64,000 nucleotides of DNA from Hemiscyllium ocellatum (lineage: Eukaryota): positions 100,842,484 through 100,906,483 of the forward strand of contig NC_083408.1 of assembly GCF_020745735.1 (NCBI RefSeq). The letters are read 5' to 3'. This document shows, in pieces, positions 3,366 to 63,322 of the stretch (within the stretch, counting starts at the first letter, position 1; each line of letters begins with the position of its first letter). The notes under the pieces were generated by a model, which was not told the origin of the DNA, made no database searches, and worked only from the letters and a program-made list of their open reading frames with translations. Position numbers and translations under genes: made by a program.

Positions 3366-5120
3366 AGACTGCTTCAGTGTCTGAGCAGTCATGAATGGTG
3401 TTGAACATTGTGCAATCATCAGCAAAAATTAGTTCTGACCTTATGATGGAGGGAAAATTATTTATGAAGCAGTTGAGGATGATTGCCTTGAAACTCTTCT
3501 TTACCTTCTCTGTTGTAAGCAAGACAAACTCTAGTTTATCTCATATCTCCAAGGAACTGTGAATTCTTTCACCTTGATCGAATTCTCAAATTCTAAATGC
3601 ACATTTCATAAAGTTTTGAAATCAGAGTGTGGGGTGGAAGGCATAGGCTTGAACTGATGTAGAGTTTAGCATAACTTGTTTGTTCTTATATTCCATGCTT
3701 TATTTGTCAAACTCAACCGATTGCAAGATGAGCACTATAACCCTGTTATAGGAAGGAGATTATGAAACTGGAGAGGATTCAGAAAATATTTACAGAAAGT
3801 TGTCAGGAATGAAGGGTTTGAGATATAAGACTGGAAAGGCTGGGACTCACCATCCTGACTTGGAAATATAACCACACTTTTTCACTGTTGCTGAGTCAAA
3901 ATTGTGGAATTCTGGATCATTGTGGGTGTACCTACATTACAATTCAAACAGGCAGTATACTCCAACCTTCTTAAGGGCAACTCGGATGGGCAATAAATGC
4001 TGGCCAGCCAGCAATGCCCACATCCCACAAGTGAAATTTTAAAAATTCCTTTTAGTCGCTCTCATAAGTTGCTTGGTGGAACTAAAAAAAACGTCATTGT
4101 GTAAGTCCATCAATAGGAAGATGATAAGCAGAGAAAGATAATGGTTCATTAGAGACCAAGAAGCAACTGTGCATGGAGTCGGCAAACATTGGTAGGGTGT
4201 TAAACAAGTATTTTGCATGTCTTCACAGTGGAGAGGATGTAGGTCCAGAATTTGGTAGTAAGGACTGTAGGTTACTGAGCAGTTTGACATCATGAGTGAA
4301 CAGTTATTGGAGGTTTTGGTGTCCAGGTGACTGCTGTGGGAGATTGGGGAGAAACTTACAGGGCTTCTGACCCAAATTCAATTGCCAAGGGGGAGATGCC
4401 ATAGAACTTGAGGATAACTAATGCATCCACATTTTTTAAGAAAGGTGTAAAGATAAACCACAGAATTACAGACCAGTGAATCTCTTGTCAGTAGTTAGTT
4501 AACTACTGAAGATAATTCCAAAGAAGAGAATGAATTTCCACTCGGAGAGGCAAAGTTTGAACAGGGACAGTGAATGACGGGGTTGGGGGAGGGGGGTGTG
4601 ATGAAAAGTAAAACTAAGTTTGCAGATGACAAGATGGTTGGCTGGAATATTGACAGTCAGGAAGAATGTTTTAGGTTACAGGAGGATATAGACTGATTAA
4701 TTAGATGGACGGTTCGGCCACAAATGGAATTTAACCACTTAAGTGTGAGGAGATGCATTATGGAAGCAACAAGACAAGGGAATATTCAAAGAATGGTAAG
4801 ACACTAGGAAGATTAGAGGGATGTTGAGTTGCTTTTCCACAGATACCTGCAGGAGGCAGGACATATTACCAGGATAGTTAAAAAGGCTACTTTATGGGAT
4901 ACTTTATCAGTTGTAGCATAAAACAAGCAAGTTACGCTGGAGCTATACAAAACTTTGCTTTGGTCACAGGTGGAGCATGAGTACAAGTGGATAGTTGTAG
5001 TCACTGCATGATAGAAAGGATATGATGCACAGGAGGGAGTGCAGAGGAGGTTCACCAGGATGTTGTCTGGATTGGGGCAGTTTTGTTATGAAGACAGGCT
5101 GGCTAAGCATGGTTTGCTTT

Positions 5121-6638
5121 AAAATCTGATTGAAGATTTGTAGCTCGGGTATCCGTTGTTGTGGTTCTGCTCGCCGAGCTGGAAGTTTTTGCTGCAAACG
5201 TTTCGTTCCCTGGCTAGGGAACATCATCAGTGCTGTTGGAGCCTCGTGTGAAGCGCTGCTTTGATGTTTCTTCCGGTATTTATGTTGGTTTGTTCTTGCC
5301 GCTTCCGGGTGTCAGTTTCAGCTGCAGTGATTTGTATGTGGGGTCCAGGTCGATGTGTCTGTTGATGGATGTTCTTGCCGTTTCCGGGTGTCAGTTTCAG
5401 TTGTAGTGGTTTGTATATGGTGTCCAGGTCAATGTGTCTGTTGATGGAGTTTGGGGATGAATGCCATGCTTCTAGGAATTCTCTGGCTGTTCTCTGTCTG
5501 GCTTGTCCTATGATAGTGGTGTTTTCCCAGTCAAATTCATGTTGCTGGTTGTCTGAGTGTATGGCTACTAGAGATAGCTGGTCGTGTCGTTTTGTGGCTA
5601 ACTGATGTTCATGGATACGGATCGTTAGCTGTCTTCCTGTTTGTCCTATATAGTGTTTTGTGCAGTCCTTGCATGGTATTTTGTAAACTACGTTAGTTTG
5701 GCTCATGCTGGCTATTGGGTCCTTTGTTCTAGTGAGTTGTTGTCTGAGCGTGGATGTTGGCTTGTGTGCTGTTATGAGTCCTAAGGGTCGCAGTAGTCTG
5801 GCTGTCAGTTCTGAGACGCTCCTGACGTATGGTAGAGTGGCTAGTCCTTTTGGTTGTGGCATGTCCTCGTTCCTCGGTCTATCTCTTAGGCATCTGGTGA
5901 TAAAGTTGCGTGGGTATCCGTTTTTGGCGAATACCTTGTATAGATGTTCCTCTTCCTCTTTTCGCAGTTCTGGTGTACTGCAGTGTGTTGTGGCCAGACT
6001 ACTGCGACCCTTAGGACTCATAACAGCACACAAGCCAACATCTACGCTCAGACAACAACTCACTAGAACAAAGGACCCAATACCCAGCATGAGCCAAACT
6101 AACGTAGTTTACAAAATACCATGCAAGGACTGCACAAAACACTATATAGGACAAACAGGAAGACAGCTAACAATCCGCATCCATGAACATCAGTTAGCCA
6201 CAAAACGACACGACCAGCTATCTCTAGCAGCCATACACTCAGACAACCAGCAACATGAATTTGACTGGGAAAACACCACTATCATAGGACAAGCCAGACA
6301 GAGAACAGCCAGAGAATTCCTAGAAGCATGGCATTCATTCCCAAACTCCATCAACAGACACATTGACCTGGACACCATATACAAACCACTACAGCTGAAA
6401 CTGACACCCGGAAACGGCAAGAACATCCATCAACAGACACATCGACCTGGACCCCACATACAAATCACTGCAGCTGAAACTGACACCCGGAAGCGGCAAG
6501 AACAAACCAACATAAATACCGGAAGAAACATCAAAGCAGCGCTTCACACGAGGCTCCAACAGCACTGATGATGTTCCCTAGCCAGGGAACGAAACGTTTG
6601 CAGCAAAAACTTCCAGCTCGGCGAGCAGAACCACAACA
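5121..6638. mobile_element. Young Penelope/Poseidon-type PLE as a head-to-head inverted pair (RT end plus GIY-YIG)
   Basis: GIY-YIG motifs NVVYKIPCKDC...YIGQTGR...RIHEH on both strands. Arms 5157-5802 and 5993-6638, 36-nt tail 5121-5156, 12-bp TSD atggtttgcttt at 5109-5120 and 6639-6650. Confidence 0.92.
6560..6604 (+). ncRNA. Minimal type I hammerhead ribozyme in the PLE 3' end (mirror copy on - strand at ~5191-5235)
   Basis: CTGATGA (6565-6571), extra T, stem II gttccct/agcc/agggaac, GAAACGTT, short stem I gca/tgc. Confidence 0.8.
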
Positions 6639-7114
6639 ATGGTTTGCTTTCTTTAGAGCAGGGAAGGCTTGGGGGGGGGGGGGGGGGGGACCTGATTGAG
6701 GTATTTAAGATTAGGAGGGGCATGGACAGAATGCATAGAAAACAGCTGTTCCCCCTAGTTAAAGGGTCAATAACAAGGCGGCATAATTTTAGACATAAGG
6801 CAGGAAGTTTAAAGGGGATCTGAGGAACTCATTTTCATCCACAGAGTGTTGGGAACCTGAAATGCACAATCTGGGAGGGTCATTGAAGGGGGAATTTATA
6901 ATCTACAAAAATAAATTGAATGAACATTTGGAATGTCTTAACATTCAAGGCAATGGGCCAAGTGTTGGAAAGTCACACTAGTGTAGATTTAGAATTTATT
7001 TAGTTGATATAGACTTGGTGGGCCAAAGGGCATCTTCTGTAGTATGATTCTATGACCTTAGGGCTGTTTTCTCATTGAAAAGAGATATCTAGTATAGAGT
7101 TTAACCTGAGGGTC

Positions 7115-7430
7115 AGATTAGATTAGATTAGATTAGATTACTTACAGTGTGGAAACAGGCCCTTCGGCCCTACAAGTCCACACCGACCCGCCAAAGCGCA
7201 ACCCACCCACACTCCTACATTTACCCCTTACCAATCACTACAGGTAATTTAGCATGGCCAATTTACCTGACCTGCACATCTTTGGATTGTGGGAGGAAAC
7301 CGGAGCACCCGGACGAAACCCATGCAGACACGGGGAGAATGTGCAAATTCCACACAGTCAGTCGCCTGAGGCAGGAATTGAACCCGGGTTTTTGGCGCTG
7401 TAAGGCAGCAGTGCTAACCACTGTGCCACC
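7115..7430 (-). mobile_element. tRNA-derived V-SINE (HE1-like)
   Basis: A box ggtggcacagtggttagc, B box ggttcaattcc, V-domain-like gtgctccggtttcctcccac, (tctaa)n tail. Confidence 0.85.
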
Positions 7431-7554
7431 CACATCAGGTGAGGCTGACAAGATGGGACCTTCATGGTGACCTCAGCAGTACAGAAATTGAACCCATGCT
7501 GAAGGCATCACTATGCAACGCAAATTAGCCATCCAGCCAACCGAGGTAACCAAC

Positions 7555-8010
7555 AACAAAAACAGAAGCTGCTGGAAAAGCTCAGCAGGTCTGACAGCAT
7601 CTGTGAAAAGAACTCAAAGTTCACATTTCAGGTCCAGTTCTGGGGAAAGGGTCACAGGACCTGAAATATTAACTTTGAATTTCTTCACAGATGCTGCCAG
7701 CCTACCAATTATTTTACTGTTTCAAAGGAAGGAATAGCTAGGCCAATCTGACCTTTACCACTATTTCCTCAATCACAGTGATATTATGCCTACAATTAGT
7801 TTAGTAGCATCTGTGGAAGGTAGCAGAGTTAACAAGTTGGGGTCCAGTGACACTTCTTCAGAATTGAAAGGTTTTGAATTATCATTGGACTCAAAACATT
7901 AACTCTGCTTTCTCTCCCCAGATGCTGGCAGACCCACTGAGTTTTCCAGCAACTTCTGATTGTATTTCAGATTTCCATCATCCATAGTCTTTTGAAGTTT
8001 TTGTTTTGTT
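7555..8010. mobile_element. Two older short PLE-derived inverted-repeat elements
   Basis: gcatctgtg...cagatgc inverted arms around decayed hammerhead-like cores. Related copies at ~13480-13760, ~14770-15025 and ~54470-54550. Confidence 0.55.
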
Positions 8011-8055
8011 TAATATTTTCACGTTACTGCTTTTCAAAGATAATAAGATTATTTT

Positions 8056-8370
8056 TAGATTAGATTACTTACAGTGTGGAAACAGGCCCTTCGGCCCAAC
8101 AAGTCCACACCGACCCGCCGAAGCGCCACCCACCCATACCTCTACATTTACCCCTAACCTAACACTACGGGCAATTTAGCATGGCCAATTCACCTGACCC
8201 GCACATCTTTGGACTGTGGGAGGAAACCGGAGCACCCGGAGGAAACCCATGCAGACACGGGGAGAACGTGCAAACTCCACACAGTCAGTCGCCTGAGTCG
8301 GGAATTGAACCCAGGTCTCTGGCGCTGTGAGGCAGCAGTGCTAACCACTGTGCCACCGTGCCACCGTGCC
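8056..8370 (-). mobile_element. tRNA-derived V-SINE (HE1-like)
   Basis: Same A/B boxes, core and tail as 7115-7430. Confidence 0.88.
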
Positions 8371-9853
8371 ATCCACAATCTGTAAAGGGGATTAAGCAAA
8401 GTGCTTCCTAATTTAACAGCATTTGAAATAAAACAAATTAATATTTGAAATAATTAATTTTCTATAAAGTGGAAGAGATATGCCATGCATCTTTACTGTT
8501 GGTGATCTTGTGTTTGTTATTTACATGCACTAATTCAATCTCAATGAATCAGCTTCACTGATCAGACAAATAGCATTTCTGTACTTAAATTATATGAATT
8601 TATTCAATGTAAGCCAACATCAATCTCAAAATTGTTATCTAAGAACCAAAATTCAGATCTCAATGAATCAAATCACCTCAGTGGCAAAACCAAAATCACA
8701 CTTTCATGCTTCAATTTTATCAACCAGCTTAGCTGTGTTTTTCTTCAAGACAATCTAACAGGACACAACCTCAGCCCAATTAACCAAGTGAATCTTTTTA
8801 ACTATGCATCAGTTTATCAGCAAAGATGCTCATAACTTGCACAAATAGACTTCTCCCACACATCCATTCTTCAACCTCACTCTACTTTTCCATCATATCC
8901 AAGGATGGAATGTTCCAGGATGCTTCCCACCAGGTTTCTTAATTTCCATTTTTCAAGGACTGCAACTCATTCAGAATTGAACTTAAAGATAGCTAAAAAG
9001 AGCCTAGAAGTTAAAGCTTTTAATAGTCATAACAACTTGGACACAAGGTGCAGACTTGAAAAGAAACATGCCATTTAATACAGAACAAGATGGAGTGATT
9101 AATTAGGCCAGCATTAGCAGGAGAATGCAGCAAGAACAGTTAAATGTCAATCTTAATTCTCTGACCAGACGCTAATTGATTAGGGTATTGGTACAGGGTT
9201 CAGCAGGGCTTTGCTCCCTCGATTCCTTTTTTTAAAAAGCCACAATGTATAAATTCCTTCATAAAAAGCAGCCTAAAGTAATTATGTATAAAGTTTTTAG
9301 CACACACAAATGGATCAACTCTGAGCTTGACTCATAATATAAAATTGGTTTCTGGTATTATTTCTCAGCACAGTCTGAATTATTTAGTAAATTACTTCCA
9401 AAAATAAAATAATATCTAATGGTTACACTTTCTTGAGGCTTGCAAGTATGGGTTGGTTGAATACAAGCAGCATGCTGCCAGCTGCAAACAGTCAAAAATA
9501 AACATTATTTGACTTGGTCTGTCAGTCACTGGGGGACACAGCCTACTCACCTAGCTTAGCATCACTTTGGTACTCAAATTCATATCACATTATTTACTTG
9601 TGTGGTAGGCAAAAAGTCATTTTGGCTTGATGGCGGCATCCTGTCAGTGGAGAAAACCACTCACTGAATTACTGTACTGCAGCAGTATTGAGACAATTTG
9701 CTTGGCTTGCTCAAAATTTGGAACATCTTCCTCTTCTAGGATAATGAGGTAAACTGGGCACCACTCAGGACCAAAAGTGGTCCTATCCCCAAAATTTTTT
9801 CGCAAGCATTATACATATTGTAACCGCTAATTGCAATTTACTAGTATTGATCC

Positions 9854-10032
9854 GAGTCAAAAAGTGTGGTGCTAGAGAAGCACAGCCGGTCCAGCAGCTT
9901 CCATGGAGCAGGAGATTCAATGTTTCAAGCATAAGCTCTTTACTGCTCCTTGGATGCTGCCTGACCAGCTGTGCTTTTCTAGCACCACACTTTTTGACTC
10001 TGATCTCTAGCATCTGCAGTCCTCACTTTCTC
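9854..10032. mobile_element. Short PLE-derived hairpin element
   Basis: Inverted arms, 32-nt tail 10001-10032, TSD ctagtattga at 9841-9850 and 10033-10042. Confidence 0.8.
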
Positions 10033-10517
10033 CTAGTATTGACTTGATCAGGGTATTGTAATCTCACAGGATAATTTTGATATGCTCTGTCCCAGTATCA
10101 AGCTTACAAGGTCAGCAGATGGCTAAGATCCTATTCAAGAAGTTGCCAATAAGATTTATCTTGTCTCGTGAAACTGTAGAAATCTCAATTTGTATATTGA
10201 CTGGTGAACATAGGCTTTCAGTAAATAATAGTTAAGAAACAATTTCCAGACATTGCAATGAATACTTCAAGGAAGGAAAGTTCACTTGATTGCACTCAAA
10301 TTTACCACTGAAATGGAACTAAGTTTATTAAGCTGTATAAACACCTTCTTTGATGCTGCTCTGGACTGAATTATTGCGAATTTGTTATACTGGAAAGATG
10401 AAAAATGTAGGAAGTTGGTGGTCAAAGATGCTCTTCTCATTGTCATCAACAAAGATGCTAACAAGGGCTAAGTCGAGAGGGGATCCCATGCCAAGCAAAG
10501 TATACAATACATCCAAG

Positions 10518-10724
10518 GAGAAAATGAGGTCTGCAGATGCTGGAGATCAGAGCTGAAAATGTGTTGCTGGAAAAGGGCAGCAGGTCAGGCAGCATCCAAG
10601 GAACAGGAGACTCGACGTTTCGGGCATAAGCCTTCCTGAAGTAGGGCTTATGCGCGAAACGTCGAACCTTCTGCTCCTTGGATGCTGCCTGACCTGCTGC
10701 GCTTTTCCAGCAATACATTTTCAG
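10518..10724. mobile_element. Short PLE-derived hammerhead hairpin element
   Basis: 16-bp TSD atacaatacatccaag at 10502-10517 and 10725-10740, 35-nt tail 10518-10552, inverted arms meeting at the hammerhead (ctgaagtagggcttatgcgcgaaacgtc). Confidence 0.88.
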
Positions 10725-11028
10725 ATACAATACATCCAAGTCAGCTTCTATGACAGACAACACTATGCCAGGTACTTAACTGTACACTTCAACAGCTCAT
10801 TGGTCAGAGATGGACTATATCACTGTTATTTCATGTTGAAAACATGCTGCCGTATTGCTGACATATTGTTCACGGTAAATCAGAAATAGTAAAACAAATA
10901 ATGAAGCTCTTTGGGGCAGCACTGTAACTCAATATGTATTCCTGCCCCGCCATCAAGAAGTATTAAACAAAGCAGCTTGTGCCACATTTTTCAGACCAGC
11001 AACAAAACATACTACAATGACAGCATAG

Positions 11029-11154
<126 letters not shown>

Positions 11155-14293: not shown

Positions 14294-14439
14294 CGGGTCT
14301 GAGGTCTATCTTCAAACAACTTCAACCGGCGAAAATAACTTGATGGGGGTAAAATATGATGGGTATTATTAAAATCCTGACAGGCTGCCCTGTCGAATCG
14401 GAGCAGAAATATCCACGACAAGCGATCAATATTTCAGTC

Positions 14440-18628: not shown

Positions 18629-18756
18629 ACCTGAAGAAGGGCTTATGCCCGAAATGTCGATTCTCCTGTTCCTCTGCCGCTGCCTGGCCTGCTGTGTTTT
18701 TCCAGCACCACATTTTTCAACTCTGGTCTCCAGCAGCTACAGTCCTCACTTTCTCC
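18629..18756 (+). mobile_element. Short PLE-derived arm with hammerhead and tail
   Basis: cctgaagaagggcttatgcccgaaatgtcg followed by the family body and the tail ending cctcactttctcc. Confidence 0.8.
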
Positions 18757-18949
18757 TATTGAGTGACTTACCAATTCAGACCAGAATTTGATTATAAAGC
18801 AAACCTTTTAAGATCCTTACATCAGTGACAGCATTGGGGTGGAAAGAGCAGCTTTTGAGTCAGAAGCAGTGAGGGAAAAATCAGAAATGGTCAGTTAGAG
18901 CAGCCAGAGAGGAGATAGTAGCTTCAGAGTCAGGAACAAGAAGGGAATC

Positions 18950-20857: not shown

Positions 20858-22870
20858 CAGAGTCATACAGCACAGAAAGACCTTTCGATCCAACTCATCC
20901 ATGCTGACATGACATTCCAATCTGACCTAGTCCCACTTGCCAGCATTTGGTCCTAATCCCTCTAATCCCTTCTTCTTCTTATACCCATCCAGATGCCTTT
21001 TAAATGTTGTCATTGCTTCCACCACTTCCTCTGGCAACACTTTCCATACACACATACCCTGTGTGGAAAAGTTACACCTCAAGTCCTTTTTAAATCTTTC
21101 CCTTCTCACCTTAAACCTACGCCCTCTGGAGTTGGGCTTTTTTATGTTGTGGAGAAAGTGAGGACTGCAGATGCTGGAGATTAGAGCTTAAAAATCTGTT
21201 GCTGGAAAAGCGCAGGAGGTCAGGCAGCAAAGGAACAGGAGAATCGACGTTTCGGGCATAAGCCCTTCTTCAGGAAACTGAAGAAAGGCTTATGCCTGAA
21301 ACGTCAATTCTCCTGTTCCTTTGATATTGCCTGACCTGCTGCGCTTTTCCAGCAAAACATTTTTATTCTCTATGCTGTGAAAAAGACTGGCTATACTCCG
21401 TCAACGCCCCTCATCATTTTATAACCTTTAAGGTCATTCCTTAGCCTTTGATGCTTCAGGGAAAATAGCCCCACTCAATTCAGCCTCTCCCTTCAGCTCA
21501 AACCCTCCAGTTCCAGCAACTACCTAAACTTTTTCTGCATCCCCCTACATTTAACAACAGCAGGGAGACCAGAATTGTATGCAGTATTCCAAATGTGGCC
21601 TCATTAATGTCCTGTACAGCTGCAACATAACATCCCAATTCCTATCTTCAATGTTATCACCAATGAAGGCAAGGATGCCAAACACTTTCTTCACCTGTCT
21701 ATCTGCAACACCACTTTCAAGGAGCTATGCCCCTGCACTTGTTTGGCAGCACTCCCCAGGGCCCTATCAATAAGTGTATAAGTCCTGCCTGGTTTGACTT
21801 ACCAAAATACAACACTTCACATTTTATCTGAATTGAACTCCATTTACCACTCTTCAGCCCATTGGTTAATCAACGTCCTCTTGTACTCAGATAATCTTTT
21901 TCACTGTCCACTATACTATCTATTTTGGTGTTATCTGCAAACTTACTAACTATTCCTCCTATATTCACATTCAAGACATTTATATAATCCACCACTGATC
22001 CTTCTGGCACATCATTGGTAACAGGTCTCCAATCCAAACATTAACCATCCACCACCACCCTATCTACCTTCAAACCAATGTTGAATCCAATTGGCTAGGT
22101 CTGCCTGGGTCCCATGTGATCCAACCTTACTAACTAGTCCACCATGTGGACGTTTGGCTGAAGTCCATTACAGACAACTTCTCTACAAAAATCTCAAACA
22201 AGTAGTGAGACATGATTTCCCATGCACAACGCCATGCTATCCTTTATCAATTCTTGCCTTTCCAAATGCATGTCAATCCTGTCCCTCAGCATCCCCTCCA
22301 ACAACTTACGCATCACTGATGCAAGGTTCACTGGTCTGTAGTTCCCTTGGCTTTTCCTGAAATAATGGCACCACATTAGCCAACCTCCAGTCTTCCAGCA
22401 CCTCACAGGTGGCTGAGGGGCCCAGCAATCTCTTCCTAACTTCCCACAAACGTCTGGGAAACACCTGATCAGGTCCTAGGGATTTATCTACCTTTATGCA
22501 TTTTAAGACCTCCAGCACTTCCTCTTTAGTATGAACTCTTCAAAACACCACAATTTGTTTCCCCAAATTCCCTATCTTCCATGTGGTTCCACATGGTGGT
22601 GAAGGACAAGAGATACACGAAATACTAAACGAATAGAAAATATTAGTTTAGTATCTCATCTATCTCTTGTGGTTCCACATGGATGGCCAATCTGATCTTT
22701 AAGGAGCTCTATTCTCTCTCTTGTCACTCTTCTGCCCTTAAATGTATTTTATAGAATCTCTTTGGATTCTATGTGACAAAGCTATCTTATATCCTCTTTT
22801 TGTCCTTCTGATTTCCCTCTTATGTATACTCCTACTTGGGATTCACTCGATCCAGACTGTCTATACCTGA
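20858..22870 (-). mobile_element. CR1 LINE ORF2 remnant
   Basis: DKSLGPDQVFPRRLWE, NYRPVNLAS and WKVLPEEV on the - strand. Interrupted by the 21151 element. Confidence 0.85.
21151..21365. mobile_element. Short PLE-derived double-hammerhead hairpin element
   Basis: Tail on the left, inverted arms, two back-to-back cores (cttcttcag / ctgaagaa), degenerate TSD tatgttgtg/tatgctgtg. Confidence 0.8.
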
Positions 22871-26757: not shown

Positions 26758-27598
26758 TGAATTTTGAGAAGACTTGTAGCTCAAGTTGATGTTCAGGTTG
26801 AAAGTTTGCTCACTGAACTGGCAGGTTTGTTTTTCAGATGTTTCATCACCATGCTAGGTACCATCGTCAGTTAGCCTCTGGTGAAGCATTGGTGTTCTGT
26901 CCCACTTTCTATTTGTGTGTCTTGGTCTGTTGTGGTGGGTTCCTTTTCTGGGAGGTTGGTAAATGGGGTCCAAACTGATGTGTTTATTCATGCAGTTCCA
27001 GTTTGAATGCCAGACCTCCAGGAAATACCATGCGTATCTCTGTTTAACCTGTCATCAGATGGATGTGTTGTCCCAGTTGAAGTAGTGTCCTTCTTCGTCT
27101 GTGCGTAAGGATACTAGTCATAGTGGGTCATGTCTTTTGGTGTTCATGTATCCTCGTGGCTAGTTTTCTGCCTGTCTGTCCGACGTAGTGTTTGTTACAG
27201 TCCTTGCATGGTATTTTGTAAACGAAGACCAACTAGCCACCAAAAGACAGGACCAGCTATCACTAGTATCCATACTTACAGACGAAGGACACCACTTTGA
27301 CTGGGACAACACATCCATCTTCGGACAGGCTAAACAGAGACACGCACGCGAATTCATAGAGGTCTGGCATTCAAACTGGAACTCCATCAATAAACACAGC
27401 AATTTGACTCCCATTTAACAATCTCTGGGAAAAAGAACCAGAAATGATATCACTCACCTTAAGAGACTAAGACACAAATAGAAAGTGGGACAGAACACCA
27501 GCGTTTCACCGGAGGTTCACTGATGGTGTTACCTAGCACAGTGACGAAATATCTGAAAAGAAAAAGACCTGCCAGTGCAGTGAGCAAACTTACAACCT
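26758..27598. mobile_element. Older Penelope/Poseidon-type PLE inverted pair
   Basis: QLATKRQDQLSLVS...HHFDWDNTSI...AREFIE on +, mirrored on -. 35-nt tail on the left; decayed TSD gacattgattta/gacacagactta. Confidence 0.8.
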
Positions 27599-29380
27599 GA
27601 CACAGACTTAGTTTAAAAGCAATTGGTAATTTTGAGGTGATTTGCCATTTTGTATTTTTCCACTTTCCAGGTGTCTCTTCAAATGAGCATTTTTTGTAAT
27701 TGTAATGTTAACAATGCTGTCAACTTTATAGTGCAGTCTACCAACAAAGTAAAGATGAATAAAAAGAGACACCTTGAATCAACCGGAATTATTTAGTAGA
27801 TCATGTCAATGTGAACTTTAAAAGCCTGAATATCATGGAAGAGAAGACTAAGTGAAGGAAGAAATTCCAATTTTGAATTGTACATTCCCGCAGAATGCTT
27901 TTCTCCCTTTTTCACACTCATTACACATTTATGTCTTAACATCATGCAAAACAACACAATTAAACGGCTCTTAGAACATCTCCTCAAATATTACCACACT
28001 CCCGGGTTCACTGAAGTCAACGTGCAGAACTGTTGACTTTGAACTAAAATGGCCAGTTCACAAACTTTAACTTTGCTGGTATACAACCAACTATCTATCT
28101 GTAATACAGCACCCCTGATTGACTCCTAGGAAAGGCAGGCACACATTAGATTCAGAGGTCTAAGTTGAGGCTTCCAGACTAAAATTACTTATTTCAATAA
28201 GTAGTCTTTTATATATAATAAATTCAAAATTCTTACTGATGTTTGGAAAAAATGGTCTCTTCTCTTTGCAATTAAACTGATTTTATTTGTGCATTAATTC
28301 TGCAGGTGGGCAAACTCAATCTTCAAGGGTTGCCTTTTCAAAGAAAGAAAAATAAATTTAAAATCCTTTCAAGTGAAAATAAACCATAAAGTCTCGGTAC
28401 AGGTACTTGCTAATAGGTATAGACCCACAGTAAATCTCTGAACATTCTTACTAAAAATCACCATAAACCTGAATGGTAAAAAAAAACTTCATTGTGGTGT
28501 CGGGTTAACTTTTCAAGGTTTGAACCACGTTTTAAGGGTGCAAGGCAAATACATATAGCAGTCGTTTTAATTTGTAATTAATACACGTGACTTAGGTAAA
28601 AATATTACCTCAAAAGGCACAGCATAAAATTGTAAAGAGCTGAAGTGAGCTCCTGCTCTACTTTGAATTGCCCAGGAGTGTCAGAGTGGAAGCTCCCTGC
28701 CAACTCGAGATGCACGAGAAATCATAATTGTTTGGAACAGGAAAGATAATCCCACAGTGCTCTGTCCATAACTGTGCATGGGTTTGTACAATGGTAAGAT
28801 TACTTCCTGAATTGAATGTTTAAATGCATCAACTACAGGTCCAAAACAAACCAAAGAACAGTTACAGCGATAATAATTGTTTAAATGTAGTATTGAAGAG
28901 TAAATCTGTACAAAATTATACATGGCAAAAATACTAAAATCATTACCTCTCAAGCACACACAGTGATATTCATTCTTCACCTGCGTTGAGCTGGCTTTAT
29001 TATAGTCAGTATTGTTGAAGGATGCTACCTGACACAACTTTTCTAGATTTAGGATAGTTCATTTAAAAGTTCTCATTTCCAACTGGTAAATAATACTCCA
29101 GTTGGAAGTAATCGCGTGACATTATGAAGATGACAAAATGAGGCCTAGATGTCACTTTCTTCAATTTGATCTCATTGCCAAGATGATGAACTGGAATTTT
29201 TGGATCTTTGGCACTGGAATGTCACCAGATGGACCCATAAACAAGGAATAGAAAACATTCAAGAAAAAAAAGTTGGAAGCCAATCCCACTTAGTTTAAAA
29301 CTTCTCCAAATAACACTTTAATTTACTATGAAACAAAATTCTTTTATACAATTTTGTGGAACATGTACATGCCCCAAGTT

Positions 29381-30813: not shown

Positions 30814-31206
30814 GAGCTGAAAACGTGTTGCTGGAAAAGTGCAGCAGGTCAGGCAGCATCCAAAGAGCAAGAGAATCGACGTTTCGGGCATAAGCCCTTC
30901 TTCAGGAATGAGGAAAGTGTGTCCAGCAGGCTAAGATAAAAGGTAGGGAGGAACGACTTGGGGGAGGGGCGTTGGAGATGCGATAGGTGGAAGGAGGTCA
31001 AGGTAAGTGTGATAGACCGGAGTGGGGTGGGGGCGGAGAGGTCAGGAAGAAGATTGCAGGTTAGGAAGGCGGTACTGTGTTCGAGGGATTTGACTGAGAC
31101 AAGGTGGGGGGAGGGGAAATGAGGAAACTGGAGAAGTCTGAGTTCATCCCTTGTGGTTGGAGGGTTCCTAGGCGGAAGATGAGGCGCTCTTCCTCCAGCC
31201 GTCGGA
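30814..31206 (-). mobile_element. Neptune-type PLE 3' end, parent of the short hairpin family
   Basis: - strand RRLEEERLIFRLGTLQPQGMNSDF (GIY-YIG C-terminus) runs into an intact hammerhead cctgaagaagggcttatgcccgaaacgtcg and the short-element body; tail absent. Confidence 0.8.
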
Positions 31207-33843: not shown

Positions 33844-33844
33844 C

Positions 33845-36367: not shown

Positions 36368-36534
36368 GGTCAGACAGCATCCAAGGAACAGGAAATTCGA
36401 CGTTTCGGGCATAAGGCCTTCATCAAGATTTCCTGTCGAATTTCCTGTTTCTTGGATGCTTCCTGACCTGCTGCGCTTTTCCATCAACACATTTTCAGCT
36501 CTGATCTCCAACATCTGCAGACCTCACTTTCTCC
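36368..36534. mobile_element. Short PLE-derived hairpin element inserted in a CR1 remnant
   Basis: 14-bp TSD tctagactcccgca at 36354-36367 and 36535-36548; inverted arms; tail on the right. Confidence 0.85.
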
Positions 36535-42275: not shown

Positions 42276-43262
42276 TCATATTGCATCTGTCTTTCTGTCA
42301 CCTCCTTTGTGTCCTCAAGCATCCATTTTCCAGTCATAATATAGACTAGTGAGTTTTCTCTTGCTTGCGTGCATTTCTGATTCTCTCTCTGTTCTTATGA
42401 TTAGTAATGGGGAGACTAGGCACGTCCCAATATCTGAAATTTTGAACATGGGGATAATTCTCAAAGAAGCAAAAGCTGGCATCTTTTGCCACAAGGTGAA
42501 AAAATCAAGATCCAGAATGTCATGTGTGAGATATGCTGCATGGAAGAAAGGAGGTGAGAGGTGTAAAGTGTTTAAATGCAAAAGCGGTCTATTCATTTCC
42601 AAGTACAGATCAGTTAACAGAAATTGTACAGATTATGTTCAAGTAAACAAGGCAATTCAGAAAAAAATCCTAGGCTGTAGAAGTAGGTTCTGATAGTATC
42701 GCCTTGCTTCTCTTTCTTCAACATTCAGCATCTGCTTTGCTCTCAGATTGAGTGTTGTGCAATACTTTTGAATTGATTGTACCTGCTGCAGAATTCACAG
42801 CTCAAATTGCAAAAAAATTAAGAAAAACTTTTCTTTTGCTCTTGCCCATTGCCAACAATCGCTTTCTTAAAATACCTTTTTTGCAATTTAAGCTATGAAC
42901 TCTGCATCAGGTGCAATCAATTGAAAAATACTGCATACTTCGTTTGTTTTTACATCTCTCACCTCCTTTCTTCCATGCAGCATATCTCACCTGATCTCAC
43001 ACATAACATTCTGGATCTTGATTTTTTTTTAATCTTTTGGCAAAAGATGCCAGCTTTTGCTTCTTTAAGAATTATTCCCATTTTCAGAATTCAGGCAATG
43101 GGACATTCCTATTCTCTCAATTACTAATTGCAGAGAGAGAAAAAGAGAGAACGCGGAGAATTAGACATGCATACAGACATGAGAAAACTCACTAATCTAC
43201 ACTATAATTGGAAAATGGATGCTTGAGGACATAGAAAAGAAGCAAAGATAGATGCAATATGA
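42276..43262. repeat. Long nested inverted repeat in FCF1 intron 4
   Basis: Outer arms 42276-42567 and 42949-43262; inner arms 42757-42816 and 42877-42936. Confidence 0.85.
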
Positions 43263-45384: not shown

Positions 45385-45928
45385 CTAAGAAAGTAACAAG
45401 AAAAGTCTGTAATTTCTCAAATGATTAAATGTTATTTTTAATGTATTTAATTAAATAAGATTATCACATTTGCTAAATTTTGCAAGTAAACAAGGAATGT
45501 GTAAAAATGCTTTGTAGACATATTTATCTATGAATGAACAGTGTGAACATTTTCAGGTTCTCAGAATTCCCACTTAGCTAATACCATATTATGCAGTACT
45601 TTACCCTGTTATCAGATGCTGCTAGCCCACCATGCAATACACAATCTTTTGGTCAAGAGAAAATTTCACCCTATTCTGTACTCTTTCTTCTTTCTACTTT
45701 AGTTATTAAGAAGGCATCACCTCATTTTTCTATCAAACTCCTTGTCAAAATTATTCAGATGACAATTTGAATCAATCAGCTGTTAAGGAATAAGCCTAAT
45801 GTGCAGTATGTGACCAACACAAGTAATGATGTGGCAAGCTTTCATGTTGGTTTGCCTACCATGCGAAAGTCAAGCATCCATTACATAACTGAAAGGGTCC
45901 TGAGATTTGAAACAAGAGATAGTTATTT

Positions 45929-46397
45929 ACGTCATTTATAAAATACCTTGCAAGAACTGTATCAAACACTAGGTTGGACAAACAGGCAGATAACTAGCCA
46001 CCAGGATACATGAACATCAAATAGCCACAAAAATACATGACCCACTATCACTAGTATCCTTGCGTACAGATGAGGAAGAACACCACTGACTAGGACAACA
46101 CAAGCAGAGACATGCTTGAGAATTCCTGGAAGCAATGCATTCCAACTACAACTATCAACAAACACGTCGACTTGGACTCCTTGACCATCCCCTGAGAAAA
46201 AGAAGAGGAAGTGACATCACCAACCCAAGGAAACCTAAACACAAATAGAAAGCGAGACTTAACACCAGTGCTTCACCAGAGGCCCACTGATGATGGTACC
46301 TAGCATGGTGACAAACGTCTGAAAACATTTCAGCTCAACAAGCAAACTTATATCCAGAACCTCAACCTGAGCTACAAATCTTCTCAAAACTCGCTAA
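45929..46397 (+). mobile_element. 5'-truncated Penelope/Poseidon-type PLE 3' end
   Basis: VIYKIPCKNC GIY-YIG remnant, hammerhead-like ctgatga...aaacgtc, tail gagctacaaatcttctcaaaac. Confidence 0.8.
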
Positions 46398-51424: not shown

Positions 51425-51529
51425 GTAAGTCTCGAAGACTCCTTCATCCAGATTCTCTCATTTTTACAAGGCGTGCATGAATAAGAATATAGAACAAATT
51501 TGAGTGAGTTAATCATTAGACCAGCAGAA

Positions 51530-57139: not shown

Positions 57140-59232
57140 CTAGCAACTATGGAGAGAAAGCAGAATTTAAGTTTTGAGTCCTGTTCTGACAAATGAACCT
57201 CAAGCAGAAAGGAATTTTTCCTCATGTCCTTACTGATCAATACCATAAAAACAAATTTTCCATGCAATATCACATTGTTTGCGATGTGCAAAATAGCTGC
57301 TGTGTTTACTAAAACACGAACATTTTGAAAAGAACTGGCTGTAAAGTGCTTGAAGTTTGGCTGTAAAAGGCAAGCTTCTGTTTTATAGTCACTGTACAAA
57401 AGTCAGGAGGAGCTCAGTGACTCCATAACCTGTAACCAAGTGACATTTTATTTAATTTTTTAAAAATCTGTTGATGGAGAAGGGACAGCATTTTTTTTTC
57501 TCTAATGTCTTTGGCTACAATGGCAAATTTCCAAGGTTATCAATATTGTGTACAGGGGCAGGGCAGGAAGCCAACTTTTCTCATGCAACTAGCAATGCTA
57601 GTTTTAGTTGACTGGCAGCAAAGCCCAAAGGAAATTGGCACCAATGAAACCTTTTTGTTTTCTGCTTCTCTATGTTTCTAAAACAGTATGGTGATGGAAA
57701 GAAATAATGCTTAACTCCACCGTGACAAGGTTTATTGCTGGTATTTTAGAATGATGGCACCATAAGTGCTTGTTTGTAATGACAAGTAAGTATTTTGTTT
57801 TGAAAGTAACATTTTTATTTACAAATCCTTATAGAATAATTGAAGAGCTGCATATGATAGTGATCTCTGTGTTTCTCAATATCCTATAAGCAATCTGTAA
57901 AACAGGGTCAGACTGCAGATGGATGGAAGTATGCAGCTGCAGTCTGCTCACTGCCCACAATTAAGCAACTGAAGTACTCTATTGTGTTGCATTTTTACTG
58001 TAAATATTTTGATGGTTTCACTTGACAAATGGTCACAGAATTTTATAATTACTGATTCTGCGACCACTGACTTAATTACATTTATCTTTTTCACAAAGTA
58101 GGATTCTTGATTTGACTAGTCACCTTTCTTGAAAGGCATGTGGACAGCTGTTACGTGTCTTTTAACCTTGTCATTTGGCCTTTTTCAATGCGTTTGTCCA
58201 AGAAAAGCTGACAGAATTATTTTCTAGTGCAGTTACTTGATTCCGCTCTACATTTTGATGTTGTGTCCTCTGGTTGTAGGTTGCACCTTTATTGCGAACT
58301 GCACTTGATTTTGTCAGCATCAATTAACAATCCACAGAGAATAAATTAAGAATATGTCTAGAAATAGTGTTGTTAACCAATTGTCCTATTGCGTCAGTTT
58401 TGATGACCTGTTCTAAAATCCCATGAAACCCTGCTGCGATATCTTAATGCTCTGACTTGACAACCTCATTTTCTTGTTAAGAATACCCACTGTGAGCTGT
58501 TTCCTGATACTACAACAGTCATTTGCTAATTGATCATTACTTCTTTCATAAAATAAGCATGTAGCTGCAACTTGTCTTTATATGTGTCTTCAACATTGTT
58601 GTCTCTGTTGCAAAATACCGTGAATTGACAATGAAAACTGGATGACAAACTAGTGAATGAGATTTGAAAAGTGGTCAACGTCAAGTCTGAACTGCTTAGG
58701 CTTGAGGAAATGAAACTGGAAGCACATCAAATTTAACACGATTCAATATACCTTTAACAGGAATTAATGTGTTAGTTGTGGAGGTGAGGAAAAAGGTGAG
58801 CAAATCAATAGTTGCTCAAGTGTAATCATGAATAGCCAAAGACTAGGTATTTAGCATCTTGAAAGCAGTATAATAGAAGATTGTCCCTGAACAATTAAAG
58901 CAGCCGATATCTAAAGTTTAATTAAAGCATCTATTTCAATTTAAGCGTGCCTTTTTTTTAAAACCATTAGGCTACTGTTGACCTATTTTATCTCCAGCAA
59001 AATCTCATTGAGGTTTTTGCTTCTGATGTGTTGCTCAAGTGGGAGAAAGAAAAGGATAATTGATGTACTGTTTCTAGTCTTCCCCATTCTATCTCTTGAA
59101 GTATTTGTTTATTACTTTGCAGTGTCTAGAATAGTAGTCTTGCACTATAAAGGATTCAAAGCCATGGCTCAGTTTATGGCATTTGTGTCTCTCAGTTAAC
59201 AGCGATAGTGAAAGTTTCACTATAGAATTTGA

Positions 59233-60760
59233 TTGCAACAAGCAGGACGTTTCTGTGCTATGCTTGACCTGCTCTTGGGTTTGAATGCTAATATCAAAGA
59301 TTTCCAGACTTACTCCTTCCTAACTGTACGCACAAGTGGAGCAAGACATAGCCCAGGAATGAACAGAGATAACGACTGTAAGTTATGATTCAGTGAGCAG
59401 AAATTTATTATGTTAAACAATTTCAAAGCAAGTTTGTAAGGCTGGAATGAAGCTCGTCTTGGCTAGGACATCCGGGATAATGACCTTGCTCTGGGGTATT
59501 GAGGAAGTACTGTATTGTTAGAGGTGCTCTGTCTCAGAGACTGTATGAAACTGAGACGGTCTTCTCTCTCATGTAAAAGATTCCTTGACATACTTTGAAG
59601 AAGAGCAAGGTCATTATCCCGGATGTCCTAGCCAAGATGAGCTTCATTCCAGCCTTGCAAACTTGCTTTGAAATTGATTGAACGTAATAAATGTTGTGGT
59701 TCTGCTCGCCGAGCTGGAAGTTTTTGCTGCAAATGTTTCGTTCCCTGGCTAGGGAACATCATCAGTGCTGTTGGAGCCTCGTGTGAAGCGCTGCTTTGAT
59801 GTTTCTTCCGGTATTTATATTGGTTTGTTCTTGCCGCTTCCGGGTGTCAGTTTCAGCTGCAGTGATTTGTATGTGGGGTCCAGGTCGATGTGTCTGTTGA
59901 TGGATGTTCTTGCCGTTTCCGGGTGTCAGTTTCAGCTGTAGTGGTTTGTATATGGTGTCCAGGTCCATGTGTCTGTTGATGGAGTTTGGGGATGAATGCC
60001 ATGCTTCTAGGAATTCTCTGGCTGTTCTCTGTCTGGCTTGTCCTATGATAGTGGTGTTTTCCCAGTCAAATTCATGTTGCTGGTTGTCTGAGTGTATGGC
60101 TACTAGAGATAGCTGGTCCAGCTATCTCTAGTAGCCATACACTCAGACAACCAGCAACATGAATTTGACTGGGAAAACACCACTATCATAGGACAAGCCA
60201 GACAGAGAACAGCCAGAGAATTCCTAGAAGCATGGCATTCATCCCCAAACTCCATCAACAGACACATTGACCTGGACACCATATACAAACCACTACAGCT
60301 GAAACTGACACCCGGAAACGGCAAGAACATCCATCAACAGACACATCGACCTGGACCCCACATACAAATCACTGCAGCTGAAACTGACACCCGGAAGCGG
60401 CAAGAACAAACCAATATAAATACCGGAAGAAACATCAAAGCAGCGCTTCACACGAGGCTCCAACAGCACTGATGATGTTCCCTAGCCAGGGAACGAATCG
60501 TTTGCAGCAAAAACTTCCAGCTCGGCGAGCAGAACCACAACAACGGATACCCGAGCTACAAATCTTCAATCAGATTTTAAACGTAATAAATTTCTGCTCA
60601 CTGAATCATAACTTACAGTCATTATCCCTGTTCATTCCTGGCTATGTCTTGCCCCACCTGTGTGTACAGTTAGGAAGGAGTAAGTCGGGAAATCTTTGAT
60701 ATTTGCATTCGAACCCAGGAGCAGGTCAAGCATAGCACAGAAACGTCCTGCTGGTTACAA
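59233..60760. repeat. Older ~260-bp inverted repeat with a Deu-SINE-like loop, split by a PLE
   Basis: 59233-59492 is the reverse complement of 59602-59692 joined to 60592-60760. Confidence 0.85.
59693..60579. mobile_element. Young Poseidon-type PLE palindrome
   Basis: Arms 59693-60116 and 60118-60541, 1-nt spacer, tail 60542-60579, 12-bp TSD aacgtaataaat at 59681-59692 and 60580-60591. Same subfamily as 5121-6638. Confidence 0.92.
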
Positions 60761-60939
60761 CCAGCACCCACCCCTGGGCGGATAAAACACATTTTCCTAT
60801 GTTGAATACCACTTGGATGAAGCATTGAGCATAGCAGTCAGTGGGTGTTTTCAGTGTCCATGGTGAAGATTGACTTTAGTGTCACTAATGACTGAGCTAA
60901 CTGAGTCCTGAAGAACAGGAGAATTACTTTGCTTAGGCA

Positions 60940-61346
60940 TGATTTGGAGATGCCAGTGTTGGACTGTGGTGTACAAAGTTGAAAATCACACGACACCAGG
61001 TTATTGTCCAACAGGTTTAATTGGAAGCACTAGCTTTTGGAGCGCTGCTCCTTCATCAGGTGGTTGTGGAGGACACAATTGTAAGACACAGAATTTATAG
61101 GAAAAGTTTACAGTGTGATGTAACTGAAATTATGCATTGAAAAATAACTTGATTGTTTAAGTTCTCATTTGTTAAGAGTGACCAAGTCTAAGGCAGACTT
61201 TGGGTCGGGCAGCAGCGAAAAGTGGCCGAGCAGACGCTGATAGTTAGGTTCAGTTCCCATAGGACGGGTCTCAACCGGAACCTTGGGTTCATGTCACAAT
61301 TAAACCTGTTGGACTATAACCTGGTGTTGTGTGATTTTTAACTTTG
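60940..61346. mobile_element. Neptune-type PLE inverted pair with internal deletion
   Basis: TSD tgcttaggca at 60930-60939 and 61347-61356; 33-nt tail 60940-60972; - arm carries the hammerhead. Confidence 0.82.
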
Positions 61347-62059
61347 TGCTTAGGCAGGGGTTGAGAGAATCAACACCAATGAGACATGTACTAGAGTTCC
61401 TCTGCCTATTTTGGATTTATTTTCTCATGCAAGTGTTGGTGGAGTTACAAAAATCTGGTCCTGATGGAGATTGTAGGGTTCTGGTTTGCAATCAGTTATT
61501 TGCTGATTTTGGATGGTTCAAATCACCTCCAGATCCCTGGTTGTAGACAGTGGCCTTATTCAGGAATGTGAAATGAAGAAAGCAATAGACAGATGTTCCA
61601 GGGCAAAAGAATCTTTGTGTTTATTTAAATGCAAAAAAGTATAAATACAAGAAAATAAAGATAAATGCAGCTCAGAAATTAACTATATCAAGTAACTATA
61701 TCGAGGGCAATAATTAGATATATCATTAAATTTAGACAGTTTACACTGTTAGAACCTAAACAGCAGTTTAATCACAATCTTTAATCAGGCTTCCTACCTT
61801 TTGGGGTTCCCTGCACCTTCACCACCCACCTTCCTTTTGATGCTAGCTAATTATATAGACTACATGTCCCACTATCTCCCCTCAAATCTGTGTTGTCCAA
61901 TGTGTTTCTGGTGTTTTCTCCTGAAGTTAAGTAGTTCCCTAGTGGTTAAAGTATGTGCGAATGAATTTTGACTGAGGTTGAAGTCCAGTATCTCTGTAAG
62001 CAGCATATTGTCTGTGCTCGGTAGCCCGATTGTAAAAGTTACCCTCAGTCTGTAGATTT

Positions 62060-63161
62060 ACAAAGTTAAAAATTACACAACATCAGGTTACAGTCCAACA
62101 GGTTTATTTGGAAGCATTCGCTTTCGGAGCACTGCTCCTTCATCAGGTGGTTTTGGAGTATAAGATCATAAGACATAGAATTTATAACAAAAGTTGACAG
62201 TGTGATGGAACTGAGATTATGTATTGAAAAAGACTTAGATTGTTTGTTACATCTCATCTTTTAGAATGACCATGTTGGTTTCAATTCTTTCATATGTAAA
62301 TCCTAGAACTTTTTATTTAAAATTACATTCTCATGTGAACTTTAACAATAGGTGTCATGTCGGCTCAGCTAATGCATTGAAGGTGTGAGGTGCCCTGTGT
62401 GAGGCAGGCTGATTCTATTACTGAAAAAGGATTTATAGAATCCTAGATGGATTTATGCAGTTTTTGAGCAAAATAAAATGTAATTCTGCAAGTTCAAATT
62501 CACCCCACAAACTTTTGTGTGTGTGTATGAGTGTGTGTGTGAGTGTAAAAGGGTATAAGTCTGTGAGACTGTGATGTGTATGTATGAGCGGATGAGAGAG
62601 TGTCTGCATTAGTGTATGGATCTGTAGGAGAAAGTATAGTGTAGTGGGGTCACCTGTAATGTGACATGAACCCAAGGTCCCAGTTGAGGCCATCGCCATG
62701 GGTGCCGAACTTGGCTATCAGCCTCTGCTTGGCCACTTTGCATTGTTGCTGTCCTGAAGTCCACCTTGGAGGATGGTCATCCGAAGGTGCGAGGTGGAAT
62801 TTCCAGGGCCGCTGAAGATCTTCCAACTGGGAGGAAACACTTCTGCCTGGTGTTTGTTATGCGGTGTCCATTCATCCGTTGCTCAGTCTCGCCACTGTAT
62901 TACGCCTCAGGGCATCTTTGCCTGCAGCATATGAGATAGACAATGTTGGCTGAGTCACATGAGTACCTGCCACATACATGGTGAGTGGTGAACCCATTTG
63001 TAATGGTGGTATCCATGTTGAGACTCTAACACATTTTGCAGCACCTGTCGTGACAGAGTTGTATGGTGTCGTCCTAAAGCTGGGCAGTTTGATGAGAACA
63101 ATGATCTGTTTGAGTTTGGTGGTTGTTTACAGCCCAGTCTAACATCGGCACCTCCAAATCA
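62060..63161 (-). mobile_element. Neptune-type PLE, - strand body with + strand 33-nt tail
   Basis: TSD tctgtagattt/tctgtagtttt at 62049-62059 and 63162-63172; GIY-YIG remnants; hammerhead near 62112-62140. Confidence 0.82.
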
Positions 63162-63322
63162 TCTGTAGTTTTTGTTTTGGGTTTGGTTCATTGCACTCTT
63201 AGAGTGGAGGTGTAAATTTGATTTCCAGGCTGAACAATAGTCCCAGACTGAAATCATTCTGGCTGTGTGTGTGTTTGTTATAGCCTGAGCTCAGGATTTT
63301 GTCCAATAATTTTAGATATTTT

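Follow-up and report, generated by a model that had tools for sequence, protein, structure and literature searches.

Background

The EN+ Penelope-like elements (PLEs) are known to leave insertions that comprise an inverted, 5'-truncated copy together with a tail of 30-40 bp at one end (Arkhipova 2013, PMC3846280; Craig 2021, PMC8557442), an architecture for which later papers also cite Arkhipova 2006. In the rotifer element Pen2a, for instance, the inverted pseudo-LTR (pLTR) is 37 bp shorter (PMC3846280, PMC8557442). A biochemical counterpart to this architecture was provided by Frangieh et al. 2024 (PMC11167929), who found that in vitro the protein of PAc (Poseidon of Anolis carolinensis) cuts both strands and extends them, and that it starts cDNA at two RNA sites, the interval between which is the 30-40 nt tail. 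The two start sites flank the tail in a stem-loop that is rich in A and C and contains the internal one; the two strands were alike in start-site use in vitro, and the joining of one cDNA to the other fell outside that study (PMC11167929).

Here we analyze a 64-kb stretch of Hemiscyllium ocellatum DNA (the window), which provides clean natural shark examples of the integration scar that separates PLEs from LINEs. Among the latter, LINE-1 is said to undergo twin priming, attributed to Ostertag and Kazazian in 2001, wherein the second target end primes on the RNA to yield an inverted segment within one TSD-flanked insertion; this second primer reportedly uses microhomology to anneal at internal positions that vary, and the 3' end is not duplicated by the inversion. 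In contrast, the second start in the insertions described below is fixed at about 35 nt from the first and both arms carry the 3' region. The integration rule itself has already been published and the 2024 biochemical study largely explains the scar; that the window agrees with this study, the only one to have examined a PLE enzyme in vitro, is a confirmation rather than a discovery.

Fold-back insertions in the window

Nine insertions in the window consist of hammerhead-bearing PLE 3'-end copies joined head-to-head in inverted orientation. Eight of these had been listed in an earlier note as having their 3' ends outward, and all were recovered to within 1-3 nt; the ninth lies at 36368-36534. 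They are like the canonical EN+ PLEs in displaying inverted repeats with 3' ends out, a one-ended tail, variable target-site duplications (TSDs) and minimal hammerheads in the repeat; ten inverted arrangements of this pLTR-like type are present in all. The tail, which is 27-38 nt long in 9/9, occurs at exactly one outer end of each two-ended insertion, with the opposite end tailless; this one-tail pairing is strict among the n=9 two-ended copies of our single 64-kb window, whereas the papers on canonical elements describe it as occurring 'often' or 'optionally'. The elements belong to an autonomous GIY-YIG family A (with relatives A2 and A3), to a family B that has decayed, and to family C, which is short and non-coding. 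These had been taken for four families of unrelated sequence, but the ORF and the tail motif alike show A and A2 to be relatives, leaving three independent lineages.

In family A, the fold-back at 5120..6638 combines a tailed arm (5120-5992, minus strand; 37-nt tail at 5120-5156) with a tailless arm (5993-6638, plus strand) that ends in CCACAACA; its 190-nt centre is part of the tailed arm, and a 12-bp TSD flanks the whole (5109-5120/6639-6650). The second, at 59693..60579, is a near-perfect palindrome with 1 nt between a tailless arm (59693-60116, minus) and a tailed arm (60118-60579, plus; 37-nt tail at 60543-60579), and is likewise flanked by a 12-bp TSD (59681-59692/60580-60591). These copies are 99% identical and share the tailless end CCACAAC(A) in 2/2 insertions, while their centres differ, with arm lengths of 872/646 nt in one and 424/462 nt in the other. 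The variant separating these two young insertions is common to both arms of each, as exemplified by a diagnostic T at alignment column 298 in both arms of 59693..60579. Family A2, an older relative of family A, is represented by the fold-back at 26758..27600, whose tailed arm (26758 to about 27225, minus; tail 26758-26792, with a length range of 29-35 nt) and tailless arm (about 27226-27600, plus) are 82% alike.

The two complete family B insertions are very different in structure, and yet in 2/2 the tailless end is AACTTTGT. That at 60940..61347 has a tailed arm (60940 to about 61188, minus; 33-nt tail at 60940-60972) and a tailless arm (about 61190-61347, plus) with an internal deletion of about 550 bp relative to its counterpart at 62060..63161; its TSD is 10 bp long (TGCTTAGGCA; 60930-60939/61347-61356). 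The latter does not consist of two long arms: a tailless body (62060-63127, minus) is joined at its 5' truncation point to an inverted piece (63128-63161, plus) that consists of the 34-nt tail alone. The centre of a further family B fold-back occupies 1..1005, with arms at 1-104 and 131-234 that are 89% alike and neither 3' end in view.

Family C contributes four fold-backs. At 9851..10032 the left arm is tailless (minus) and the right arm tailed (plus), with a tail of 29 nt at 10004-10032 (estimate range 27-29 nt) and a 10-bp TSD (CTAGTATTGA; 9841-9850/10033-10042). The near-palindromic copy at 10518..10724 has a tailed left arm (35-nt tail at 10518-10552), a tailless right arm ending in ACATTTTCAG and a 16-bp TSD (10502-10517/10725-10740). 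The insertion at 21151..21365 is similarly arranged, its tail at 21151-21188 being of ambiguous length (29-38 nt), and both its arms begin at the hammerhead core CTGAAGA across a 4-nt spacer. Finally, the copy absent from the earlier list, 36368..36534, has a tailed right arm, a tailless left arm and a 14-bp TSD (TCTAGACTCCCGCA; 36354-36367/36535-36548). The claim that one end stops short at a family-specific point is borne out by the recurrent points of A and B and by a zone of about 9 nt for the tailless ends of family C, but 36368..36534 is an exception, as its tailless arm is 63-66 nt short, at a 3-nt TGC microhomology.

Significant TSDs of 7-16 bp surround 7/9 insertions; among position pairs drawn at random with equal slop, a match has P = 0.0007 at 10 bp or more and P = 0.009 at 7 bp or more. 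The earlier assertion that the listed insertions are bounded by TSDs, of 10-16 bp where intact, stands for most of them. The exceptions are 26758, where the TSD has decayed, 21151, where it matches imperfectly (1 mismatch over 9 bp, or 3 over 14 bp), and 62060..63161, where only 7 bp are exact, or 11 with one mismatch (62049-62059/63162-63172).

Relationship to Penelope-like elements

A 254-aa ORF piece of family A (5230-5991, minus strand) showed a weak GIY-YIG match (E = 0.021, below the Pfam cutoff), and its shark homologues, recovered with up to E = 6e-122, carry PF00078 (RT), PF26215 and PF01541. A GIY-YIG match was likewise obtained for A2 (E = 2.6e-4). Since every copy is 5'-truncated, the RT part is absent from the window; judging by the homologues, the predicted coding organization of family A is that of the EN+ PLEs, namely a telomerase-like RT followed by a C-terminal GIY-YIG domain. 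In family B, a GIY-YIG-like motif is discernible by eye in a decayed frame. Its peptide pieces had no match in the Pfam and word-index searches, and an exhaustive search recovered 11 matches, one of which (P0077) has a sub-threshold GIY-YIG overlapping the matched stretch. Family C has no ORF, and is placed in the PLEs by its putative hammerhead, tail and fold-back anatomy only.

A putative minimal hammerhead ribozyme motif is present in the terminal repeat. The pattern CUGANGA, one bulged base, a helix II of 4-7 bp and GAAA was found nine times as against 0.22 in shuffles, and 8/9 of these motifs lie within A, B or C arms; one such motif is seen in the family B body (62122-62146, minus). The same pattern without the bulge had zero matches in the window, the motifs being recovered once it was allowed; in their bulged base and long helix II they agree with the published description of the PLE minimal hammerhead. 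Rfam searches returned nothing for the whole window at the gathering score, and no hammerhead for 59000-63500 at E <= 10, where the only matches were to microRNAs, spuriously, owing to the perfect palindrome. Family C further resembles the non-LTR retrozymes and PLE-derived hammerhead elements (PMC4209133; 10.64898/2026.07.22.740005) in being short and non-coding with PLE-style ends, and in its putative minimal hammerhead motif, which is of type I and has its bulged base on the 5' side of helix II. Unlike retrozymes, it occurs as dispersed TSD-flanked fold-backs or single arms rather than tandem arrays.

Proposed mechanism of integration

What is directly observed in the window is the anatomy of the insertions, their TSDs, outer ends that are fixed and inner junctions that vary among copies of one family, and one tail per insertion. 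We believe that these are probably single-event insertions of 5'-truncated PLEs, generated by priming at two RNA sites from two target strands and a head-to-head join. The endonuclease would nick both target strands 10-16 bp apart, thereby giving rise to the TSD, and each freed 3'-OH would prime cDNA synthesis on the element RNA. One cDNA would start from an outer site (site 2) and produce the tailed end, and the other from site 1, about 35 nt upstream, and produce the tailless end; the two antisense cDNAs would then be linked head-to-head, the likely means being a template jump from the RNA to the other cDNA. Both-strand extension and the two start sites are drawn from the published work, and the genomic end-products are consistent with them; that both primers act in one complex, and that a template jump is the joining step, we infer. 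The earlier note proposed that reverse transcription is primed from each of the two target-DNA ends, with one start at the RNA 3' end and the other about 35 nt inside; this proposal fits the window, matches the biochemistry (PMC11167929) and is correct in outline, yet already published. As with PAc, two sites would be used with both strands as primers, and priming would need little if any homology to the cleaved DNA (microhomology in these insertions is 0-3 nt). The genomic products differ from those of PAc in always including one of each start site, as read here from end-products alone. If the ends chose their site independently, the chance of one tail in 9/9 would be at most 0.5^9 = 0.002.

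AC-rich runs occur at or beside site 1 in family A (AACCACAACAAC), family B (ACACCACAG) and family C (CAACACA). In each of these, a helix of 7-8 bp is predicted between an upstream segment and the tail, starting 8-11 nt past the internal site (P = 0.04, 0.024 and 0.012 against shuffled tails for A, B and C, respectively). As the predicted helix encloses site 1, it would place this site in an AC-rich loop, which is also where the published element has it, with the 3' strand of the closing helix inside the tail. Plain MFE folds do not always choose this helix; one apparent compensatory change was read by eye between A and A3, and covariation among family C copies was set aside because dead copies mutate neutrally once inserted. 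The ruler-like second priming suggested earlier from the near-constant offset is not fully supported; a ruler is inseparable from a conserved RNA module.

Certain observations sit less comfortably with two-site priming: the lack of strand preference of PAc in vitro does not by itself predict one-of-each pairing, 36368 departs from the fixed point, clean TSDs are missing at 21151 and 26758, and the near-perfect palindromes at 59693, 10518 and 21151 are also expected from snap-back synthesis. The last process, put forward for PLE palindromes as self-priming (PMC3846280), would have the site-2 cDNA fold and be copied back to a stop about 35 nt short, the hairpin then being opened out and ligated to the remaining target end. 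The near-perfect centres of 59693-60579 (with its 1-nt spacer), 10518-10724 and 21151-21365 favor it, as do the longer tailed arms of 5120 and 26758, which a looped snap-back would give. However, the tailless arm extends further 5' than the tailed arm in 4/9 insertions (62060, 60940, 9851 and 36368), and the tailed arm of 62060, being the tail alone, is not copyable from the tailless cDNA; we therefore regard snap-back as unlikely.

Somewhat less probable still is an origin of the tail in staggered endonuclease cleavage of a transposition intermediate rather than in a second RT start. This was given as the likely origin by Craig et al. 2021 (PMC8557442), and the Drosophila endonuclease needed tail sequence for recognition, according to the account of it in PMC11167929. 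Nevertheless, subsequent in vitro experiments placed cDNA starts directly at the two tail edges (PMC11167929), and both the inverted arm made up of the tail alone and the outlier 36368, with its microhomology, resemble priming events.

Hairpin masters that are transcribed end to end and inserted by single-primer TPRT, such that the tailless end is the RNA 5' end, are already disfavoured and in our estimate very improbable. It is true that 10518 and 21151 have their centres at the same place, the hammerhead core, where single-arm copies also start, and that such an RNA, if 5'-truncated, could account for 36368; but 5' truncation would erode the outer end and not the centre, whereas the 99%-identical family A copies have different centres and the same outer tailless end, a pattern repeated in B and in the C copies 9851 and 36368. 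Copies of a family that share the outer tailless end but differ at the inner junction indicate that the fold-back is made anew at each insertion. Finally, although palindromes can arise from assembly and PLEs insert into each other, an artefact, a later rearrangement or two independent insertions can hardly be entertained, as TSDs flank whole pairs with no internal TSD, the arms of old copies have diverged to 82-89%, source variants are common to both arms, and runs made from further samples of this organism contain 0.82-0.83 of the words of 5050-10800.

Returning to two-site priming, we tentatively raise the possibility, which we hold to be the less probable form of it, that the two priming events are physically coupled, with a dimeric RNP presenting site 1 and site 2 of a single RNA to opposite nicked strands. 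Such coupling would leave exactly one tail in every two-ended insertion, and the site-2 cDNA would either stop at the occupied site 1, leaving a tail-only arm, or trail the first polymerase. The tail-only arm of 62060-63161, which ends at most about 5 nt from site 1, is what a site-2 cDNA blocked at an occupied site 1 would be expected to look like, and it counts in favor of two-site priming in general. If coupling were true, the 'alternative start sites' would become an obligate, coordinated double TPRT, and the geometry of the complex on the conserved RNA helix would set the tail length. The strict one-tail pairing (9/9) and the evidence against simple snap-back and inherited masters may go beyond what has been published. 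Should the pairing and tail-only arms hold genome-wide, they would point to two cDNA starts coordinated within one complex, which would bear on how PLE enzymes complete integration and on their use for DNA insertion.

Single-arm and other copies

Hairpins had been proposed as the routine integration product; they are indeed common (10/14 interpretable copies in the 64-kb window) but not universal, as the other 4/14 are plain single arms. The family C arm at 1749..1851 (plus) is 5'-truncated and tailed, with a 15-bp TSD and no inverted partner, indicating that plain insertions also occur. Another, at 18631..18757 (plus), is tailed and starts at the hammerhead core. Two more tailed arms without an inverted partner lie at about 3245-3359 and, in the 5'-truncated A-like (A3) copy, at about 45792..46386 (plus). 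Neither a full-length PLE copy nor a direct pLTR tandem is present in the window, where most copies are short derivatives that are 5'-truncated or non-coding. A direct tandem array of a related PLE was seen on an ENA contig (L001), which says nothing on fold-backs. The inverted repeats at 42310-43231 and 33449-33621/33940-34112 are not PLE fold-backs. A longer family C copy at 30814..31206 (minus) has a tailless 3' end, ending in TTTTCAGCTC, while the opposite end has been lost where it meets a LINE 5' region beginning near 31207.

One tail per two-ended insertion

Using an inverted-repeat search together with BLAST searches initiated with 3'-terminal segments of the individual elements, we located the copies of hammerhead-bearing Penelope-like elements (PLEs) across the 64-kb window. 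Together, the searches recovered all eight insertions named in an earlier note on this sequence and a ninth two-ended insertion (36368-36534); beyond these there are four single-arm copies, a tailless end (30814) that has lost its partner side, and another family B fold-back, of which the centre lies at the window start. Side-by-side comparison of the ends revealed that every two-ended copy consists of head-to-head arms with 3' ends facing outward, one of which reaches the full 3' end of the element, while the other stops before it, lacking a terminal stretch of typically ~35 nt (the tail). Exactly one tail is present in nine of the nine two-ended insertions in this single 64-kb window, with none having two or zero tails; were the site chosen independently at each end, such pairing would arise by chance with a probability of at most 0.002. 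The interpretable single-arm copies are likewise tailed (4/4). The proposal in the note that hairpins are the routine integration product holds only as a local count, namely 10 of the 14 interpretable copies in the 64-kb window.

Exact flanking direct repeats of 12, 12, 10, 7 (11 with one mismatch), 10, 16 and 14 bp bound seven of the nine two-ended insertions. Among random pairs of window positions allowed the same boundary slop, repeats of at least 10 bases occurred in 0.07% and of at least 7 in 0.9% of trials. The two insertions without a clean target-site duplication (TSD; 21151 and 26758) are old copies with an arm identity of 82-90%. Since the TSDs lie outside both arms of a pair, and none was found inside the two-ended pairs, each pair represents one insertion event. 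In the young family A insertions, the single variant separating the two insertions is common to both arms of each, and the arms otherwise show just 1-2 private changes each in 425 nt.

Three element lineages with a common hammerhead core

The note had spoken of four unrelated families. BLAST detected no DNA similarity among families A, B and C, and A2 and A3 are older relatives of A, sharing its ORF, similar tails and a 69% DNA match; thus, there are three independent lineages rather than four. Family A retains an open 254-residue C-terminal piece of its ORF (window:5230-5991, minus strand) with a weak GIY-YIG match; its shark homologues (up to E = 6e-122) carry the reverse transcriptase, the PLE linker domain and the GIY-YIG domain, and its best protein matches come from Hemiscyllium, Chiloscyllium, Stegostoma and Rhincodon. 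In family B the reading frame has decayed; a GIY-YIG-like motif can be recognized in it by eye and has weak database support. Family C is devoid of an ORF.

Among the matches listed, those closest to the family A protein outside sharks belong to the parasitic flatworms Clonorchis, Spirometra/Sparganum, Dicrocoelium and Heterobilharzia (41-51% identity), followed by ant proteins (~30% identity), with bony fish absent; an old host-parasite transfer or mere database sampling could account for this pattern. Another relative of the family A protein (P0038) lies in a direct tandem PLE array on an ENA metagenome contig (L001:1-12495), with a period of ~2.6-2.8 kb and units 92-99% identical. Direct tandems, the second of the two classic arrangements of PLEs, are thus present on that contig but absent from the window.

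All three lineages display a predicted hammerhead core, comprising CUGANGA, one bulged base, a helix II of 4-7 bp and GAAA, positioned ~50-100 nt 5' of the internal point at which the tailless arm stops. The pattern occurs nine times in the window versus 0.22 times in shuffled sequences. Judged from its sequence, this core corresponds to the published minimal hammerhead of PLEs, with which it shares the bulged base and a long helix II (PMC4209133); Rfam models did not detect these hammerheads. The 5' ends and fold-back centres of family C cluster at the first base of the core, CTGAAGA (18631, 21250-21301, 10630-10645 and 3359), rather than at the cleavage position predicted after GAAACGTC. The template RNA of family C seems to start at the core for a reason other than self-cleavage.

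Family-specific end-points and a potential helix

The tailed outer end is precise in all families, being CTTTCTC +/-1 nt every time in family C. The short arm of family A falls short by 37 nt in both copies, ending at CCACAAC(A), and that of family B by 33 and 34 nt, ending in both copies at AACTTTGT. In A2 the shortfall is 29-35 nt, a boundary blurred by decay. In family C it is 27-29, 35 and 29-38 nt (the last ambiguous), with end-points spread across ~9 nt if the tailless end at 30814 is included; the copy at 36368 is an outlier, with a shortfall of 63-66 nt and a 3-nt TGC microhomology at its end-point. The tailless ends share 0-3 nt of microhomology with the target. The distribution is therefore peaked, and neither of the outcomes that the note had named as refuting its claim, broad unpeaked breakpoints or inverted copies usually lacking shared TSDs, was observed in the window.

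In families A, B and C a segment upstream of the internal site could form a 7-8 bp Watson-Crick helix with the tail, from 8-11 nt after that site (P = 0.04, 0.024 and 0.012, respectively, against shuffled tails), and AC-rich runs occur at the internal site. By eye, one helix pair appears to be altered on both sides between A and A3 (G-C to A-U). The helix and AC-rich site echo the AC-rich stem-loop published for Anolis Poseidon. Given the predicted helix, the 'ruler' suggested in the note is indistinguishable from an RNA module that is conserved and contacted by the enzyme.

Formation of the fold-backs

The anatomy of these insertions is that of the textbook PLE scar (compare Craig et al. and Arkhipova et al. 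2013): a 31-bp tail at one inverted pLTR and an inverted pLTR 37 bp shorter have been described (Arkhipova et al. 2013; PMC3846280). Purified Anolis Poseidon protein cleaves and extends both DNA strands, initiating cDNA at a pair of RNA sites that lack homology to the cleaved DNA; the internal one lies inside an AC-rich stem-loop, and the tail is the stretch between the two (Frangieh et al. 2024; PMC11167929). Accordingly, the central inference of the note, that both target ends prime, one at an inner and one at an outer RNA site, is right in outline and already published, and the window insertions are shark cases of a known scar. Based on this biochemistry and the anatomy in the window, the endonuclease would most likely nick both target strands in a staggered fashion, with both 3'-OH ends priming cDNA on the element RNA, one at each of two fixed sites. 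We infer that the two primers may be coupled in one complex and that the two cDNAs would be joined head-to-head by a template jump, leaving the observed centres, which vary from a perfect palindrome to a 190-nt loop.

A simple snap-back of the tailed cDNA as a general route is contradicted by four of the nine insertions, in which the tailless arm extends further 5' than the tailed arm. In one of these four, 62060-63161, the tailed arm is the 34-nt tail alone, inverted and joined to a 5'-truncated body, a structure that snap-back of a tailed cDNA cannot yield. Inheritance from hairpin-shaped masters is disfavoured: copies of the same family (A, B and C) have a common outer tailless end and different inner junctions (e.g. 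family A arms of 872/646 nt in one copy versus 424/462 nt in the other). Thus, the fold-backs are formed anew at each insertion. With priming at both sites, the tail-only arm can be accommodated as an outer-site cDNA blocked at an occupied inner site. The strict one-tail pairing and tail-only arms are the single lead that deserves a genome-wide test.

In the family B insertion at 60940, the tailless arm (61190-61347) lacks ~550 bp relative to the 62060 copy (62105-62655), including the hammerhead and a TG/CA-rich part, with the junction ...catgtcaca|attaaacc...; this arm derives either from a deletion or from an internal template switch.

Neighbouring sequence

Another inverted-repeat element of ~1.5 kb (window:59230-60763) encloses the young family A fold-back (59693-60579); the arms of this outer element (59230-59417 and 60577-60763) and its inner pair (59415-59492 and 59602-59679) are 92-96% complementary. 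A ~920-bp inverted-repeat structure (window:42310-43231) has arms of 76 and 67 nt that are 84-90% complementary; examination of this structure found neither a hammerhead nor PLE features. More than 20 consecutive G residues (window:6668-6692) lie within LINE-derived sequence ~30 bp to the right of the family A insertion at 5120-6638.
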